DNA of 64,000 nucleotides from Adineta vaga (GCA_021613535.1 CP075493.1:2666001-2730000); one strand, 5' to 3'; shown: positions 15,862 through 31,573, numbered from the stretch's first letter. A program made the numbers and translations. The notes: generated by a model not told the origin, from the letters alone.

Positions 15862-17387
15862 ATGTCAACGAGGAGTAAAGATGAAATTCTCGAGAGTTTT
15901 ATCTCTATCACAGGATGTTCAAGAGATCGAGCAGTAAACTTTCTGAGAGCTGTAGATTGGGATGAACAAGATGCTGTAGTTCTATTTTTCGATAGTGATA
16001 ATACTGAACAATTTGAGCCCACTACGTCAATTGAAACGAGATCACCCGTTCAAAATCCAAGTTAGTATTTCTTTATTTGCTACAATAATCTTAAATATAA
16101 ACATATTTTCTAAATTGAATTTTTTAGATAGACGTATTCGTAATGAACCAAATGCGTATGAATCAGACGATGATTTACTACAAAATGCTCTCGAAGACAG
16201 TTTACGTATTAAGCAATCTGAAAAACCATCAACTATGGTTCCAAATAGAACTAATCAACATAAATCTATCATATCTTCAAAGATCAATACTGTTGATACT
16301 TGGCGTCGCACTGACGATGATTCAGATGATGATGATGGTAATTAATTGAATACTGACCAAAATGAACTGTATTTGTTTTTCCTTAGGTCAACCTTACTAT
16401 GCCGGTGGTTCGGAACGCAGTGGTCAACAAATTATTGGACCTCCAAAGAGTAAAGATAATGATAAAAAAGTAGCTCATGTTTTTGAAGCTGCTCGTCGAC
16501 AAGGTGCTCGAGAAGCATCTGATCGTGAAACAGCATCATCGTATTCAAAGAAAGAAAAACCATTTACTGGTGCTGGATATTCTCTAAGTAATATTTATGA
16601 AACAAGACAAAATGATATTTAATTTCTTAATTCGTCTAATATTCAGATGATGAACATGTGCCTTCTGCTGCTCGAGGTCCGTCGCCGTCAGGTGGTGCTG
16701 CAGCAGCAGCAGCGACAGCTAATAATAATAGAGTTGAACAATTACCAATACGATTTTATTCCAATGGATTTACTGTTGGCGATGGTGAATTACGTCAATT
16801 TGAAGAGAATAGAGAATTTATGGAGTATATAAAACGTGGTGAAGTACCACCTGAACTTCGTAATTTAAATAGCAATGGTAAACAAGTTGAGGTACAGAAT
16901 ATCTATACTAAAAACTAAATGAATTTTTTATTATTCTTATTTGGATTTGTAGGTGAGTCTCGAAGATCATCGTGGTGAAGAGTATAAACATGTTGCACCT
17001 TCATTCAAACCATTTACTGGAACTGGTCATACCGTAGGTTTACCAAGATCTGGTCCAGGCTTATCAGCAACAATAATATCAGATTCTCTTGATACACATC
17101 ATCTTGAAGAACTTGCTCGAAAACGATTAAGAACTTCCTTATCATCATCAACAATTATTCGTCTTCGTTTACCAGATATTTCTACACCATTATGTATACC
17201 AATTGATTTAAATCGTACTCTCGTAGATATACGAAAGTTTCTCACAGAAAACATTCCTTCACTTCAATCGAATACATTCGAATTCATGGAACCACCATCC
17301 ACACGAATCAAACGTGATGATGAAAAGAAGAAAATCAAAGATTCAAAACTATCCAATTGTACACTTGTCGTCCGACGAATTGCTTAA
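15862..17387 (+). CDS. NSFL1C: NSFL1 cofactor p47 (UBA-like, SEP, UBX)
   Basis: FISITGCSRDRAVNFLRAVDWD; YYAGGSERSGQQIIGPP; SEP domain FYSNGFTVGDGELR..IKRGEVPPEL; FKPFTGTG; UBX-like IIRLRLPD. Confidence 0.9.
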
Positions 17388-17610
17388 TTTTCAATTCAGC
17401 ATATACATATTTTTGAAATGTATGGAGAGAAAACATGAACAAAATATTCTTTATTTTTTTTAGTTCTGAGAATTTATTTTTCACTTCAGTTTGTTTTCAT
17501 CTGAATTTAATAATAAAAAATGAAAGAAAACCGATTGATTTCTTAATCTATATCATATAGATTTACTAGATTATTTTCAAACTCTTTTAGATTGATACAT
17601 CTAATTTAGT

Positions 17611-19137
17611 ATGATCACAATCGATGGATCATATCTCGAAGGCGTATGTTATATAGTCGAATTTCAATGAGAAACATCTTGATCTATTTCTGATTATAGG
17701 GCGGTCAAATATTGCGTAATGCAACAACATTGAGTGTGATATTAAATATTCCTGTTCGTATTACAAATATTCGAGCTGGTCGATCTCAAGATGGATTACG
17801 ACCACAACATTTAACAAGTATTCAATTGTTAACAGAATTCTCCGAAGCTAAACTTGATAATGCAACGATTGGTACAACAGATATTCAATTCATACCGAAA
17901 ATAATTAAGAGTGGAAGTTATATAGGTGATACGAAAACAGCTGGGTATGACCGTCAACTATTTATTCAATAAAAAGAAAGTCTTTTTTATTTCTCAGAAG
18001 TGTCTGTTTAATGATGCAAACGGCTTTACCATGTTTACTTTTCGCTAGTGAACCTTCGGAACTAAAATTACTTGGAGGAACAAACACGGAATTCGCACCA
18101 GATATTGATTATTATGAAATGGTAGAATGTGAATCCAATTTCAATTCTGTAAATGTCTATTTTGAATAGATATTTCAACCAATAGCGAAACAATTCAATT
18201 TTAACTTTGATTTAAGAATTATTCGAAGGTTTGTATTGTTTCAATTGTTAGATAATTGCAGTAAATGGTAGGATTTTGTAGAGGTTATTATCCAAAAGGT
18301 GGAGGTGATGTACGAATTACAATCAATCCAATTGAGCATTTAAAAGCAATCAATCTGACAGATTTTGGACAAATAAAAAGATTTTTCGGTCGATCTTTTG
18401 TCGCTGGTAATCTTTCGATACAGGTTCGATTGAACTATGAATATGATGTAACTTTCTTTCTTTGTTCTTAAATTTAGATTGCTAATGAAATGACTGAAGC
18501 AGCAAAAAATTTAATACATGAACATTATGCAAAAGACATCCCAATAGAAATCGAAATTATTAAAGAACCTGATAATATGATCATTGGTACAGCTAGTGGT
18601 ATAATGTACGAGAACAGCATCATTTCTCATTTGGATGATAAGAATCGTTTTAGGATAGCCGTAGAAACAACGACAGGTTGTCTATTGGCTGCCAATGCAT
18701 TAGGTAAACGTGGAAAATCAGCATCTGAAGTTGGTATACAAGCAACAGAAGAACTACTCAAAGATCTATCTTATGAAGCATGTGTTGATCGATATCTGGA
18801 AGATCAAGTAAGTTACTGAAATTTTGAATTTCTTGATCTAAATTTGTTCGGTTTGATTAGTTGATTCTATTAATGGCTCTAGCAAAAGGACATTCAAAAA
18901 TTCTATGTGGACCATTATCTGATCGTACGAAAACGGCAATCTACGTTGTTGAACATCTAACAAACGTTTGTTCATATTCATATTGAATATTTACTCGATA
19001 TTTTACTGTGTCTATTTAAGGTTAAATTTCAAATCACAGAAAATCTCTCAACTAAAACTGATGATAAATCATTCACTTCACATTCTACCACTCTCATTGA
19101 ATGTGAAGGACTTGGATGTCAACGACGATCTTTTTAA
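17611..19137 (+). CDS. RTCA: RNA 3'-terminal phosphate cyclase
   Basis: [11 protein letters not shown]|GGQILR; [15 protein letters not shown]; LLGGTN; RGYYPKGGG; [17 protein letters not shown]; IECEGLG. Confidence 0.93.
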
Positions 19138-20779: not shown

Positions 20780-23700
20780 ATGAAACAACCAAATGAAAAT
20801 CTTTCAACAACAGATTCAAACTATACAACATGTAATGGACATCCTAATGATTTAGCTAAAACACGTAAAGATTCGGATAATGATGATTCAATAACGAATA
20901 CAAGTTCAACATCATCAGTAAATGATGTTCCATTAAATAATTGTCCTGATACATCCTCATCATCGTCTAATTTAAATACAAGTGAAATAACAACAACAAA
21001 TCCAAATAGTTCAGATGAATTGGTTATTCTACCGGAAATTTCTTTCAATATTCGAATTCAGTCACCTGGTTTAGATACTTTTGATTTACCAGTAAAAATA
21101 ATAGAAGACAAATTTTCAAATAATTGAATGTATTTATTTTATGTTTCGTCTAGGTTACATCAAGTGAACTTGTTCAAGAAATTCATCAAGTTTTAATGGA
21201 TAAAGAAGAAACATGTCATCGAACATGTTTTTCCTTACAACTTGATGGTAACATTTTGGATAATTTCACAGAATTGAAAAATATCGAAGGATTAAAAGAA
21301 GGAAGTTTATTAAAAGTTGTTGAAGGTTTGTTAAAAGAAAATTTCTAATAATTTATATATAAAATAATTTGTTATTTAGAACAATATACTGTACGTGAAG
21401 TACGAATTCATGTACGACATATCAATGAATTAATTCATTCATGTGATTTAACTGATTTGTATAACGGTGTGAATGGTTATTCCTTATGTCTTGTTAATGA
21501 TATAACTAATAGTGATACACCATCGTCAACAATGACTGGTATTGAGCATATATTTCGTTAAATTTCATTGAATTGTTTTGCTTTGAAAATGATTTAGATC
21601 GAAAGAAAGGTGGTGAATTGAATGAAAATGAATCCAATGTACCTGAGTATTTACTACCAAATCAAAAGGATGTTTTACTTACACCACTATTTACAACAAA
21701 TAATAAAGTTAATGTAAATAATTCTTTTCTTATTTCTCTAATTCGAGTTCATTTATGTGTAAAAAGTAAGATTAGACATGCGTTTATGAACACGATAAAT
21801 CATTCTTTGTATCGGCAATATTCAAAAATGCATTCCTAATTACAACCGACACATTTCTTTCCCATCTGGAATCATACGTACGATAAATGAGACATAAATC
21901 ACTAAATTTGATGTTATTTTACAAATGAAAATCTATCATTTGTCTAACTTATTCTTCTTTATAGCGTTTACAATGTGTTAAAAGTTTGGCTTATAGTGGT
22001 TGGAATCCACCAAATGGTTCAAGAAAATTACATGGTTAGTTTCATTCGAGAACGTTTTCAAGATGAACATTATCTTTATTTTCTTTCCCAAAGGTGATCT
22101 TATGTATTTACAGGCAACAACATGTGAAGAAAAATCTTTTCATATAACAGCCTGTACAAAAGGTTTTTATGTTAGTCAGTAAGTATATTTCGATAGGATT
22201 GTTCATTAAATATTTACATATCATTATTGAATTGTTAAATAGAACAACAGATGAAAAATTTCTTCCAAAACCGGTGCAACCAAAAGCTATCTTTCATTCA
22301 ATTGTTGATTTGTTGAATAATATAAGTCCAATATTTAAAAAGAAATTTTCTGCTATTCAACGTAAACGTTGTACAAAACATCCATTTGAACGTATTCAAA
22401 TTCCATATCAAATTCATCCATGGTTATCACCACGTTTTGAACATATAATTGATCATTTTCGAGCTGAAGATGGTATGAAATAATACCTTTTGATTTATTC
22501 AACTAAACATTCTTTTATTTAGCAAATATTAATAAACTCGGTCATGAAGATCATATTCCTGGTCAAATACGTGATTGGAATGAAGAATTACAAATTACAA
22601 AAGAATTACCAAAGAAATCCTTGCCAGAAAGACTTATACGAGAACGTGCAATGTTTAAAGTACGAAATTCTACAAATTTTCTTTTTCATTTTTAATAAAT
22701 ATATATTTTTTGTTTCTCATGTCTAGGTTCATAGTGATTTTGTTTCCGCTGCTATTCGTGGTTGTCAGGCAGTTGTTGATGGAAATATAATGGCAATTAA
22801 TCCTGGTGAAGAATCCAAGTAAGTCAAGTTTTTATTACCATTCTATGACTTTTTTTCAATACATGCAAAGATTAATATTGAAAAAACAAACTGATCGATA
22901 ATGTATTCTATTCTGTCTAGAGTTCATATGTATATTTGGAATAATATGTTCTTCAGTCTTGGTTTTGATGTTAAAGAACATTATAAAGATTTCGGTGGTG
23001 ATGCAGCAGCTCATACTGCGCCAACAAATGATTTACAAGGTGTTCGTGCTATAAATACACTTGATTTAGATGGTTTACATACACTAGGCACTATTGTTGT
23101 CGATTATCGTGGTATGCGTGTAACGGCCCAGTCAATCGTTCCCGGTAAGTTATCGATCGTTTCTGTTGTTTTTTTCGTTCTCTACGTCGATATCAGCGAG
23201 AAAAGAAAAACATAACAGATAGAATTCTCACGCCTTCCATTAAATATTTCAAATCATGTTGATATATTTTCGTCGACAACGATATTTCTTTCTTCTCCTT
23301 TTTCTCATAAGTTTTTTCTTAATCTATAAATCTCATCGTACAATAACCTATTTTCTTACGGATGAACATCGAATTTATACATCTTTAATTATTGAATTAC
23401 CACGTCTCGAACGTTTAATTCGTGTAAAACAATCGAATCTATCGTATTTACAAAATCGTCTATCGAAAGTTGAAAAACATTTGACAAAATATTCTTGGCA
23501 TTTAAATCGTTTGATCAAAACAATTCATTATAATACTCAAGAACAAAAACAAATTTCATATTTCAATTCATTTGATTTCGATCTAAATCAAAGATTAAAT
23601 AACAATCAAACAAAATTTCTCGTCTATTTTCATTCCATCAATATTTCAAATGATATCGATGATCATATTCTACATGAATTTCATTCGAAAATCTCCAAAA

Positions 23701-26700
23701 TTCAAAGCCCTTATATAACATATAATGAAAATGAAGCTTATTTACATTTAATTTATCTTCCAATTCAATCGAATAAACAAAATATTTGTTATAAAAATAT
23801 CGTTGATCGAAAATATTTCGTTCTCTATGAACTTCTTCATGATATTACTGAACCATTCGATGAAAAGTGTTTTCAAGGAAATTTCCTTCAAGTGAAATTC
23901 TTTACTCGATTCAATCAAATACATGTTAATAATGAACAACAAACATCGATTAGTATTCTATTTCTCAATACGAATGGTAAATTTACAATAAATCTTTATC
24001 TAAATAATCCTTTTTTTCTTCTTCTTTTAGTAACTTCATCTAGTGATGAATATCAACGATTAAAGAATAATTATAACATCAGTATTGAATGTTATGATTT
24101 GCCTTGTCTAATGACGATCTTCGATAAAAATATTTCTATTGTATCGATTATTTGTTCATCATCATATTCAATTATTATTCAAAATCAATTCTATGAATTA
24201 TTTTTTTATCTTCTTTCTGAACAAATTCATTTAATTATACCAACTTGTCAACATTATCTTCCATATTCTAAAGTTATTGATTATTTTCATCGTTCATCAT
24301 CTCTTCCTTGGTTATATACAATCTATTTTCAAACATTTGAACATCGTTTTCATACATTAATTGCTTATCTACGTACTTTATCTCATCTATCTACATTACC
24401 AAAATTATCGAAGAAATTCATTGAAATAAAAAATCAATTAATTAAAGAAAAGAATTATTATTATTTAATTCATCATCGAAATAATAATTTTACTCAAATG
24501 TCAATGGGTCTTATGGATGCGATTAGTTTTCAATCCTATCGAAAATCTTCATTCTATAACGAACCAACATTCTATGATCAATGGAATCGTATCTATCAAC
24601 CATTTTATCGTTCATTAACTCAAACAAATCCATTTGAACTGACATTTTCGAAGGAAAAATATACAATTATAATTTTAACACATAAAAAACGTTTCTATCA
24701 ATTAAATCGTTTATTATTACATCTAAATGGTTTGATTAATCTTCATCGTATTATTGTTTTATTCAATCAAATTGATCCATTGTATGAATCAACTCATCAA
24801 AATTTAACATTAAAAGATTTTCTTGATGATTATTATGTTTATTTACCATCGATACATGTCGAAATTGTCTATATATTCAATTTAACCAATAATTTAAATA
24901 ATCGTTTTCTACCATGGAATGAATTTATTCAAACAGATTGTATTTTATCATTAGATGATGATAGTTTTCTTCGACATGATGAAATCGAATATGGATTTCG
25001 TGTTTGGAAAGAGAATCCTTCTCGTTTAGTTGGCTTTATTTCACGTTCACATCGATTTCATCCATTAGAATATGATGCATCATCATCGTCATGTTTCTAT
25101 TCAATGATTTTAACTGGTGCTGCTTTTCTACATCGGTGGTATCTAGATTTCTATACGAATATTATGTCTAAACAAATTCGTGATTATATTCAAATAAAAA
25201 TGAATTGTGAAGATATTGCTATGAATTATTTAATCAGTTATTTAACAAAACAAAGTCCTATTAAAATTGGTCATCGTGAAACATTTCATTGTTTGAAATG
25301 TCAAGAAAGTCTATCGAATAAAATTACACATTATCATCAACGAACTGAATGTTTAAAATATTTTTCTACTATCTATCATTTCGTACCTTTATATTATTCT
25401 GTTTATCGTATTGATTCTTTGTTAAATCTGACATCTTGTTTTTCGTTAAATGAATTCTAAATGTGAAAATTTCTTTTTTTTTTTGTCTTTTTTCAGGTAT
25501 TCTCGAAAAAGAACAAGAACAAAGTGTTGTTTATGGCTCGACAGATTTCGGTAAAACTTGTACAACAAATGAGAAATATAAAGAATTATTGGAGAAAGTT
25601 TCAACAATGCTTAAAATCAAACCACATGCTGTTAAAACAGAAAAAGGAGATATTGTGGATTTATTAACAGCCATTGAATGTAAAGGAATTATTGGTAATG
25701 ATGGAAGACATTATTTATTAGATTTATTACGTATGACACCACCGGATCTGAATTATTTACCAGGTAAATTCATATTTCAATTTGTGTTCTTTTGTAATCC
25801 ATGAATTTCTAGTTGATGTCGAACATCTTTCACCAGCAATGAAACAATTCGATTATCCAAAAACTTATAAACATCGTTTATGTTGTTTAAGACAAGAATT
25901 AATTGATGCTTTTATTGAGTAAGATTTCATTTATATTCTTCTGACAATCCATAAAACTTTTAATTTAGACAAAAATACGTAGATTTCTATCGTTCAATTG
26001 CACTTAATCTATCAAAATTACGATCAGCTGAAGTATGTAATGATTGATAAGCGAATGAAAAAAGTATTCATTGAATTATTTATTTAGTCAACATCGAATG
26101 AGAATTCTGAACGAACAAATGTTGAAGAAGCAAAACGTATTGTCAATGAAATCAGTGGTAAAATTGTTTAATTGAAAACTCACAATAGTTTATTCTTCTG
26201 TTTAGTTGAAGATAATAGCCGAGAAATTATCCAATCAGCATGTCGTTCAATTGGATCTGTAAAAGATAATGAATTTGATGTTCGTTTCAATCCAGATCTA
26301 TTTCAACCACATGTAACATTAAATCAAACGGTATTGAATTGAAATAGAAAATTTTTCTTTCTTAAATTCAATTATCTGACATTTTAGGCAACAGAAACAG
26401 CGGCTGATATCAAATTACTTAAAGAAGCATCTGAATATTTAGTATTAAAACAAATTCCATTAATGATTCAGGATTTTCAAGATCATTCATCAGTACCAGT
26501 CGATGGTGAAAGTCTTTCCGAAGCCATGCATTCAAGGTAATGAATTCATTCTATAAAACAAAAATCAATTGAATAACTTCTTTTCTTTTCTTTAGAGGAA
26601 TCAATATTCGATATCTCGGTCGAGTTGCTGATCTTCTCGCTCAACAATCTTCTCTCATTTATCTCTTACGTTATTATTCTTCTCAAAAAAACCTTTCACT

Positions 26701-29517: not shown

Positions 29518-30005
29518 TTAAAAGCCAATCAATACAAATGAAACGAGAGTATAGAGAACAAAAGTAAAACCAATATCAATTAAAAACAATGTACGACGTT
29601 GTTTGTATTCAGATTTTTTTCCGAAAAAAACCTTATTCCAACCATTGAACTAAAAAGAAACGATTTATGTAATAAAAGATAATCTAATTGACCGGAACTT
29701 ACAGTATAGAATCCACATAAGATTCCTGCAGCTAACATCGCACTAAGAAAATGATGTTTTCGAATATCAAAAGCGATCAATAATATATTCAATAAGAATG
29801 CATTCAATAAAGTTCCAATGTTTGACATCAGAATTGATCGATTATTACATTCATCACCTTCATTCCATTGTGTTGCTTTTAACCATTGTTTTTGAAAACC
29901 AATTGGTGAATACCATGTATAACCAAGAAACATATTTGTACAAATAATTAAAATCAATTTTGCTAATGATGTAAAGGTAAATGATATTGGTAGAAGTTCT
30001 ATCAT
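29518..30005 (-). CDS. DUF1761-like small multi-TM protein, 2 exons (intron 29650-29702)
   Basis: FLGYTWYSPIGFQKQWL resembles the DUF1761 'G.LWYSP..FG..W' motif. The spliced exon 2 ends LFLIDIGFTFVLYTLVSFVLIGF*. Confidence 0.7.
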
Positions 30006-30679
30006 GTTTGTTTTTGAATGACGAACGATAGATATATTAGGATAGAAATCGAAATAATGAAGAAGATATATTTTAAATGATATGATATGTATGTATGTCT
30101 TTGTTAATCTTCGTTTTTTGTAATACTAGCATGGACTCTTTGAACAAAGGTTGGATATGTGAGGTAAAGAAAATATAAGTGAGACATGAATTAATATTAC
30201 ACGATGTGTAAGTTTTTGAATAAAATTCGAAAATTTATTGTTGAAAACTGTATGCATAGTTTCAAAAAGAAAAGAGCGCAGTACAATCGATGTAAAATAT
30301 AAGGCGTCGAGTTGAATTCATAGCAAAGAGAAAACTTTGAACTTTAAGAAGATAAATATTTCGTGTGTATCATTGATACTCATACCTTCAGTGCAATGAC
30401 TGTCATAACGAGTATCAGTGAAGTTTAGCAAAGGAAGAGTTGACTTAGATTGAATCTGTAGTGAAATGTTACATGTAACTGTGAGAATAGAGTACATCAC
30501 TGTTTTTTTCATTTTCACTTCTGCTATTTGGTTGATAAGATAACATGATATCGTAAGTGAATCATAATCAACAGAACAGCAAATAGCGAACGAAACAATA
30601 GAAAAGTATGTTAGAAATTTGTAACTACATGTCGTTGAATATTTGTTGATATAAATGAAATAAAAGACAAGACTAATTT

Positions 30680-31573
30680 ATGGGCTGTAAACAAGTTAAA
30701 GTTAATCCAGGTGAACCGGTGAATGAAGTTGAATTAGAAAGAATTGTATCGACTACTTCGGAAGCAAACATTATCTCGAATACAACAAAGAGACATTCAG
30801 TACTAGCTTATTTGAATCCACTCGCGGTTTCAAGATCAGCAGCCGATGAAACCATTAATCTGAATCCGTCAACACCTGCCACACCAGTGACATCTCAATC
30901 CAATAATGATAATAATATTACTACAATTACTACGAAGTTCAATGAAACAAGTTCAACATTTATCGTTCCGGAAGAGACGGTAGTCTATCGACAGAATATA
31001 TCTACGCATGTTACTGTTCACGAGAATTTGTCGGATACTCATGAATATAGTAGTATGAGTATAAGATCTCATGAAACAGATAATTCCTATTCAACACATG
31101 GTTCCTTTCTGTCTTCATCAAACAATTCAAACATGCTAGCATTTGGTGAAGATGCTATTCGAAGATTTATTTCTGCGAGACCAAACAGACCTGTCAATCA
31201 AGCTTCAACACATCGTGGTAATTGGAGTGAACAAGATGATATTTCCTATTCTTTACGTGATAGTATGGCTAGTACCGTATCTGCTGATTCCGAAGGATCT
31301 GTTGTAGATCTACCAAGAGTTTCTAAACCAGTATTTGTTCATCCAAAGAATCAAACTTCAAAACAAAAGACTCTTGTTAATCAAACATCCAGCGATTTTG
31401 ATGGATCCGAATTGCATCCTGTAACAGATACGAATTCAGCAACTATAGATTTACATGTGATGACAGAACGAGTAGTATCTAATCTAAGATCGGAATCGAC
31501 TAAATTAAGCAATTATGACTATCAAAGTCGCGGTGTAATTAGTGAAACTTCAAATGAATCCGATGGAACTTAA
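30680..31573 (+). CDS. Single-exon Ser/Thr-rich orphan protein with an N-terminal MGC acylation-like motif
   Basis: Uninterrupted 297-aa ORF in AT-rich DNA; starts MGCKQVK; no recognisable domain. Confidence 0.65.
   Translation: MGCKQVKVNPGEPVNEVELERIVSTTSEANIISNTTKRHSVLAYLNPLAVSRSAADETINLNPSTPATPVTSQSNNDNNITTITTKFNETSSTFIVPEETVVYRQNISTHVTVHENLSDTHEYSSMSIRSHETDNSYSTHGSFLSSSNNSNMLAFGEDAIRRFISARPNRPVNQASTHRGNWSEQDDISYSLRDSMASTVSADSEGSVVDLPRVSKPVFVHPKNQTSKQKTLVNQTSSDFDGSELHPVTDTNSATIDLHVMTERVVSNLRSESTKLSNYDYQSRGVISETSNESDGT

Follow-up and report, generated by a model that had tools for sequence, protein, structure and literature searches.

The window analysed here is a 64,000-nucleotide (nt) stretch of the Adineta vaga genome (GCA_021613535.1, CP075493.1; contig 1, positions 2,666,001-2,730,000), taken from an assembly of 100.8 Mb in six contigs with a GC content of ~30%. 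The close protein relatives all belong to bdelloid rotifers (Adineta ricciae and Rotaria species). A CLUH-type gene lies on the plus strand of the window, and one of its introns houses a second, complete gene in the same orientation, which is predicted to encode a glycosyltransferase of the EXTL3 type. Coordinates are counted from the first letter of the window, and (+) denotes the plus strand.

The host intron spans 2352 nt (23145-25496, +), from a GTAAGT donor to a TTTTCAG acceptor. The exon on its 5' side (22921-23144, +) matches positions 62-134 of the Pfam CLU profile (E = 1.8e-26), and its coding sequence ends with ...SIVP and the first base of a glycine codon (...TCG TTC CCG G up to 23144, then GTAAGT, i.e. 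G|GTAAGT). The exon on its 3' side (25497-25763, +) begins with (G)ILEKEQEQ and matches positions 138-225 of the 225 in the profile (E = 3.3e-26); the host acceptor reads ...TTTTTTCAG, with its AG at 25495-25496, followed by GT ATT CTC GAA AAA. The remaining exons match the CLU_N and TPR families in Pfam, and the host was therefore assigned as a CLUH-type gene. Given that the two flanking exons supply CLU positions 62-134 and 138-225, an intact CLU domain requires the splice 23144>25497 across the entire 2352 nt, which joins profile positions 134 and 138; this is the junction, SIVPG|ILEKE, that had been read from the sequence in the original prediction. Lengths of the other CLUH introns (n = 23) were taken from a heuristic exon chain, generated by scripted longest-open-reading-frame chaining and made only for this measurement. 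They range from 36 to 156 nt with a median of ~55 nt, in keeping with the ~50-60 nt first given for most of them, so that the 2352-nt intron is a strong outlier.

The nested open reading frame (ORF) runs from an ATG at 23256 to a TAA at 25458-25460 (+) and was read from the stop-free translation of the sequence. It had been described as an ORF of 2205 nt; its start, stop and frame stand, but it contains an internal intron of 54 nt (23977-24030, +; GTAAAT...TTTTAG, acceptor pyrimidine fraction 1.00) that is in frame and without a stop. Coding exon 1 accordingly covers 23256-23976 (+), as delimited by translation and by orthologous exon-1 ORFs in 17 clusters, and coding exon 2 covers 24031-25460 (+), including the GT64 catalytic domain (Pfam PF09258), the DDD motif within LSLDDDS and the stop codon. 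When translated, the internal intron inserts 18 residues that orthologues P0001-P0003 do not have, and orthologue ORFs are interrupted at ...LNTN, the exact intron site, in contigs L007 and L008 and in 17 further clusters. With the 54 nt removed, the nested protein has 716 rather than 734 residues. The exact 734-residue product was not on record in a protein look-up; look-ups for the nested gene returned genomic contigs only, and all 17 exon-1 clusters were genomic ORFs that break at the intron. Conservation of this spliceosomal intron argues against a retrocopy origin. An unbroken nested ORF of 701-712 residues was seen in contigs L006 and L009 (proteins P0001 and P0002) and in protein P0031, and the missing intron in these three suggests lineage-specific loss.

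The translation of exon 1 has a hydrophobic segment like a signal anchor at its N-terminus, a long helix and an N-terminal domain that has diverged. The GT64 match covers residues 469-722 (E = 1.1e-63) and scores 215 bits, where the cut-off is 21.3. Matches in the PDB were ranked with human EXTL3 first (7au2/8og1, E = 2.6e-61), followed by EXT2 (2.6e-38), EXT1 (1.4e-31) and EXTL2 (1.6e-19), and among the nearest non-bdelloid database proteins every named match was an animal EXTL3, with ~42% identity over the GT64 domain to vertebrate and echinoderm sequences. The nested LSLDDDS aligned to LSIDDDA of 7au2 (HMMER), and D567-D569 are invariant in nine bdelloid sequences. A profile built from 23 bdelloid sequences matched the N-terminal helix of EXTL3 weakly, as well as a 35-residue segment at the end of its GT47-like domain (EXTL3 residues 485-519, conditional E = 1.8e-4, likewise weak), both in the order in which they occur in EXTL3. 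A Pfam search of three orthologues, over their first 450-465 residues and at E values up to 10, found no GT47/exostosin domain (PF03016), and the nested protein, unlike animal EXTL3, is ~200 residues shorter and has no Pfam GT47 domain in its N-terminal half. An AlphaFold2 model of orthologue P0001 from a 23-row alignment (mean predicted local distance difference test score 45.8, predicted template modelling score 0.28) was too poor to give the fold of that half. Since the GT64 domain, the PDB ranking, the nearest relatives, the DDD alignment and the profile matches agree, the nested gene was called as EXTL3-type with a diverged and shortened N-terminal half, i.e. as a predicted glycosyltransferase. 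The same comparisons place it as an animal-type gene and not a foreign one, and they narrow the exostosin-like identity given in the original prediction. EXTL3 is the N-acetylglucosamine transferase that starts heparan sulfate chains.

Searches of the A. vaga genome detected one GT64 locus, the nested gene itself. GT47 domains above the cut-off were observed at three other loci (contigs 3, 4 and 5), none with an adjoining GT64 domain. EXT1/EXT2-type two-domain polymerases may be missing from this genome or split within it.

The layout of a CLU exon, a same-strand nested gene and a second CLU exon is common to all bdelloid lineages sampled and was found in 11 other bdelloid contig families besides the window. 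It was seen in Logan, ENA and JGI contigs (L006-L010) and in four JGI contigs (L019-L022), and it is kept in the most divergent homologues found (L023-L026, exon 1 identity 43-48%). No monogonont or other non-bdelloid orthologue for a synteny comparison was present among the matches listed. The pairwise ratio of nonsynonymous to synonymous substitution rates (dN/dS) of the nested gene is 0.18-0.34 and its ORF is intact everywhere, as under purifying selection. Synteny in other rotifers and dN/dS had both been named as checks when the locus was first described, and both favour a genuine gene. A complete guest gene lies in a single host intron, and guest and host are each intact. These comparisons establish the nested ORF as a real, evidently functional and vertically inherited EXTL3-type gene with two coding exons, and they place the origin of same-strand nesting in this intron of one CLUH copy before the split of the sampled bdelloid lineages.

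A second CLUH copy is located on contig 4 (~11.788 Mb), with a downstream exon 88% identical to that of the window copy. At the identical codon, VPG|ILEKE, it carries a 76-nt intron (L004:1281-1356) in which no trace of the nested gene was found. Its downstream exon is divided by an additional short intron (L004:1440-1505) after ...KYKEL, which the window copy does not have. Third-position differences over the upstream exon (62 codons) were 0.18-0.37 for the contig-4 copy versus 0.10-0.50 for other lineages, with no separation between them. Distances this noisy favour neither loss of the nested gene in the contig-4 copy nor its gain in the window copy.

On the 5' side of the nested gene, 111 nt separate the first intron base from the nested ATG. 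The first 52 nt (23145-23196, +) resemble a small intron, with the host donor, a pyrimidine run, a branch-like CTCTAC and an AG at 23195-23196, with which the pyrimidine-rich ...CTCTACGTCGATATCAG ends. This AG could serve as the acceptor in trans- or in cis-splicing. The region from this candidate acceptor to the ATG (23197-23255, +) starts with CGAGAAAAG and contains no upstream ATG. Upstream of the AG at 23195-23196 the pyrimidine fraction is 0.65, equal to the median of ordinary CLUH acceptors, whereas AGs closer to the ATG have fractions of 0.18-0.24, and 23196 is for this reason the sole credible acceptor before the nested ATG. The order of host donor, pyrimidine run, AG, purine-rich leader and ATG was kept wherever the 5' flank could be read, in 11 lineages including that of the window, with pyrimidine fractions of 0.60-0.96 in the run and purine fractions of 0.53-0.84 in the leader. 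The block ...AG CGAGA(A/C)A or CGAGA recurs in eight of the 11. The distance from the donor to the first AG past the pyrimidine run is 35-56 nt in nine lineages and 89-92 nt in two, which leaves little room for a promoter inside the intron (35-92 nt between host donor and first AG). The pyrimidine-rich acceptor originally noted at 23195-96 is thus borne out as a candidate by an ordinary acceptor score and by an order of elements that recurs across lineages.

Reading frames across this segment were then compared with the nested start. Read-through from the upstream CLUH exon meets a stop at 23213. A hypothetical cis-splice 23144>23197 puts the CLUH frame in the frame of the nested ATG, in which a TAG (23220-23222) and a TAA (23241-23243) occur; the TAG ends the CLUH frame 8 codons past the junction and 33 nt before the nested ATG. 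With stops in every relevant frame, a CLUH-EXT fusion protein is excluded, and the nested gene therefore needs an mRNA in which its own ATG can be reached. The TAA at 23241 had already been put forward against such a fusion, and the stops at 23213 and 23220 add to it.

On the 3' side, a 36-nt spacer (25461-25496, +; pyrimidine fraction 0.94) lies between the nested stop codon and the end of the intron, and it consists of the polypyrimidine tract and acceptor of the host. The 3' end of the nested mRNA has to form within these 36 nt or further downstream. Across nine lineages the distance from stop to host acceptor is 25-71 nt, and the two tightest, at 25 and 26 nt, place the host branch site in or beside the last nested codons. 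No AATAAA is present in the 36-nt spacer of the window. An AATGAA (25449-25454, +) in the last nested codons is a candidate poly(A) signal, identified from a hexamer comparison in the nine lineages, of which six have AATGAA, AATAAA or TATAAA on or just past the stop. The tight 3' side described in the original prediction (36 nt, a polypyrimidine tract, no AATAAA) was accurate, but the AATGAA before the stop had been missed. A hexamer at the stop would fit 3' end formation in the spacer, with the T-rich tract of the host serving as the downstream element.

The 23-nt sequence of the bdelloid spliced leader (ending ...ACTTACCAAGAG) was used as a search pattern and tested against the genome. The pattern gave 59 genome matches with at most 2 mismatches and 0 for the reversed control. 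The matched leader sequence is GCTTATTACAACTTACCAAGAG, in each case followed by GTAAAT, and the loci are arranged in head-to-head pairs. Pairs of leader RNA genes lie ~154 nt apart, for example at L012:1340-1530 (contig 1, ~2.551 Mb) and at ~30 other sites, and they cluster especially on contig 5 (9.88-9.93 and 10.91-10.93 Mb). An Rfam scan of one spliced-leader locus returned nothing relevant, and Rfam holds no rotifer leader family. The leader has been reported on >50% (PMC1925144) and on ~60% (PMC4824033) of bdelloid mRNAs. Operons in Rotifera were listed as 'not determined' in a 2008 table (PMC2481426), and no paper on operons, nested genes or nested cistrons in rotifers or bdelloids was found.

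From these features we infer a route by which the nested mRNA may be made. Transcription would begin 5' of the host donor, either from the CLUH promoter or from one within upstream CLUH, and RNA polymerase would read on through the intron. The conserved 3' splice site at 23196 would then receive the 22-23-nt bdelloid spliced leader, giving a monocistronic mRNA with a leader region of ~59 nt in which the nested ATG is the first AUG. The AATGAA at 25449 may direct cleavage and polyadenylation, which would fall within the 36-nt spacer. For any one transcript, formation of the nested mRNA would preclude the host splice 23144>25497, so that either a CLUH or an EXTL3 mRNA would result; nothing in the sequence points to regulation of this choice. 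We give this combination (leader at 23196, 3' end in the spacer, an either/or outcome with CLUH per transcript) about an even chance of being right. Trans-splicing at 23196 is plausible, given the conserved order around the acceptor and the ~59 leader genes. A stronger version, in which the locus is an 'intronic cistron', is put forward tentatively, and we would not expect it to hold in full: a single promoter would serve CLUH and EXTL3, leader and host donor would compete for an acceptor ~50 nt behind that donor, the arrangement would have been held over the whole bdelloid radiation, and the locus would be one of a genome-wide class of same-strand nested genes whose mRNAs are resolved in this manner.

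Several observations weigh against the leader-based route. For the nested gene, the start of transcription, the junction with the leader and the site of polyadenylation are each predicted from sequence. The 3' splice site near the nested ATG is acceptor-like and conserved but not unpaired, since the host donor lies 52 nt upstream, and the unit from that donor to 23196 is not distinguishable from normal CLUH introns (GTAAGT, median ~55 nt, 0.65). With a consensus donor at that distance, cis-splicing to 23196 is an equally good prediction from the sequence, and the trans-splicing originally proposed is in this respect only partly supported by the conserved acceptor and the presence of leader genes. 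In nematodes, a trans-splice acceptor switches to cis use when a donor is present upstream of it, so that 23144>23197 may win. The aligned AG is absent from L010 and L023, where the first AG lies at +89 to +92, and no recognisable poly(A) hexamer was found in the spacer of three of the nine lineages. A promoter within the upstream CLUH exon may also exist.

Such a promoter belongs to a different account, possible though somewhat doubtful in our view, in which the nested gene is ordinary, has a compact promoter of its own and is independent of host transcription save for possible interference. Transcription would start near the end of the upstream CLUH exon or in the first intron bases and give a capped mRNA, with or without later addition of a leader. 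Same-strand nesting of genes that have a promoter of their own is common, and in mammals about half of nested pairs are co-oriented (PMC11694760). Some 35-60 nt ahead of the ATG there is a conserved block, GTCGATAT..AGCGAGAAA (TATAAG in three lineages), which might act as a core-promoter element instead of an acceptor. The TATA-like form varies, however (GATATCAG in the window, GATAGCAG in L007), whereas the pyrimidine run and the AG after it, which mark a 3' splice site, are conserved; a start in the upstream exon would moreover place several upstream ATGs in the leader. A reading of TATAAG before CGAGAAA as a TATA box was rejected because it is not conserved. We consider it unlikely that the nested gene serves as an alternative terminal exon, reached by cis-splicing to 23196 over the 52-nt intron, with the RNA ending past the nested ORF. 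The product would be a bicistronic mRNA for truncated CLUH and EXTL3, from which EXTL3 is translated by reinitiation or internal entry, or the RNA would be a mere by-product. The ordinary-looking 52-nt unit and the 35-56 nt between donor and first AG in nine of 11 lineages suit this account, as does the use of such a choice at unc-60 and unc-17/cha-1 of C. elegans (PMC3875643). In four related lineages (L008:222-315, L020:194-292, L021:549-645 and L022:3925-4008) a cis-spliced CLUH frame would also stay open to a TGA that overlaps the nested start (ATGTTGA). Against it, the CLUH frame of the window stops 33 nt before the nested ATG, and neither the window nor L006, L007 or L009 has the stop/start overlap. 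Ribosomes would not be expected to reinitiate efficiently once they have translated a long upstream ORF, and a gene under purifying selection needs a dependable route of translation. Termination-reinitiation through the ATGTTGA overlap was rejected, as the overlap occurs in four closely related lineages only and is compatible with chance. Because the CLUH intron follows nine coding exons and lies mid-domain, a cis product would be bicistronic, and the spliced leader is the likelier route.

Two further accounts concern the gene itself and not its mRNA. Several public models treat the nested ORF as a giant coding exon of CLUH: database proteins P0003, P0004, P0005, P0007 and P0013 (Rotaria socialis, Rotaria sp. 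Silwood2 and Adineta ricciae) carry both CLU and GT64 Pfam domains, and naive longest-ORF exon chaining in this analysis gave the same chimera. We regard a genuine CLU-GT64 fusion as very improbable given the stops at 23213 (on read-through) and at 23220 and 23241 (after a splice to 23196). In addition, the fused models use ad hoc splice sites that remove the conserved N- and C-terminus of the nested protein and break CLU between positions 134 and 138, and in the contig-4 CLUH copy the corresponding exons are joined to each other directly. These database models are likely artefacts. The P0003 model runs from ...ESLS directly into ILEKEQEQ. A dead insertion or an assembly error can be given almost no probability at all. 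The unusual layout, and nothing more, would recommend it; independent ENA, JGI, Logan and NCBI assemblies share that layout, and the ORF is intact, has a dN/dS of 0.18-0.34 and is the only GT64 gene detected in the genome. Misassembly is excluded by recurrence of the layout in other bdelloid contig families and in the fused database models.

In the public proteomes of Rotaria socialis, Rotaria sp. Silwood2 and Adineta ricciae, the chimeric CLU and GT64 models at this locus conceal the only gene of the EXTL3 type and spoil the model for CLUH. In a single row, the locus presents a consensus donor, a normal-looking acceptor at 52 nt, a whole gene and a stronger second acceptor, and it thereby offers a natural test of the competition between cis-splicing, leader trans-splicing and polyadenylation in an animal with 50-nt introns. 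If the intronic-cistron proposal is true, one pre-mRNA would give either a mitochondrial-biogenesis factor or a Golgi glycosyltransferase.

Gene order around CLUH is shared between the window and ENA contig L009: a SEP/UBX (p47-like) gene, an RNA 3'-phosphate cyclase (RTC) gene, CLUH, a minus-strand DUF1761-like ORF and a DENN-domain gene. The neighbouring genes occupy 16640-19000 and 29580-31570 in the window. The p47-like and cyclase genes are on the same strand with ~240 nt between them.

Same-strand nesting as such is not rare, and the statement in the original prediction that most nested genes are antisense was too strong, since the bias in mammals is only slight (PMC11694760). The C. elegans loci unc-17/cha-1 (with unc-17 in the first cha-1 intron) and unc-60A/B similarly hold a same-strand unit with its own 3' end inside an intron, and which of two mRNAs a primary transcript there becomes depends on the acceptor and poly(A) site that are chosen (PMC3875643). 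At the 5' end the mRNAs of those loci share no more than a non-coding or one-codon first exon, and cis-splicing makes the choice, whereas the CLUH intron is preceded by nine coding exons (as counted on the exon chain) and interrupts the CLU domain midway, and CLUH and EXTL3 are functionally unrelated proteins. Spliced-leader operons of nematodes, tunicates and chaetognaths likewise contain same-strand genes tens of bases apart, in which the downstream gene begins at a leader-receiving 3' splice site and a poly(A) signal can lie at or on the stop codon (PMC12460157). A leader gene family, as in those operons, is present in this genome; the CLUH/EXTL3 locus differs in that the second cistron is inside an intron, its candidate acceptor comes after a working 5' splice site, and its 3' end borders directly on the host acceptor. 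The mammalian pair H13/Mcts2 likewise has a protein-coding gene within an intron of its host, and activity of the nested gene goes together with premature termination of the host transcript (PMC13309782). Mcts2, however, lies in a large intron and is driven by a CpG-island promoter of its own, whereas the guest in CLUH nearly fills its intron and leaves ~50 nt free 5' of it and 25-71 nt free 3' of it.

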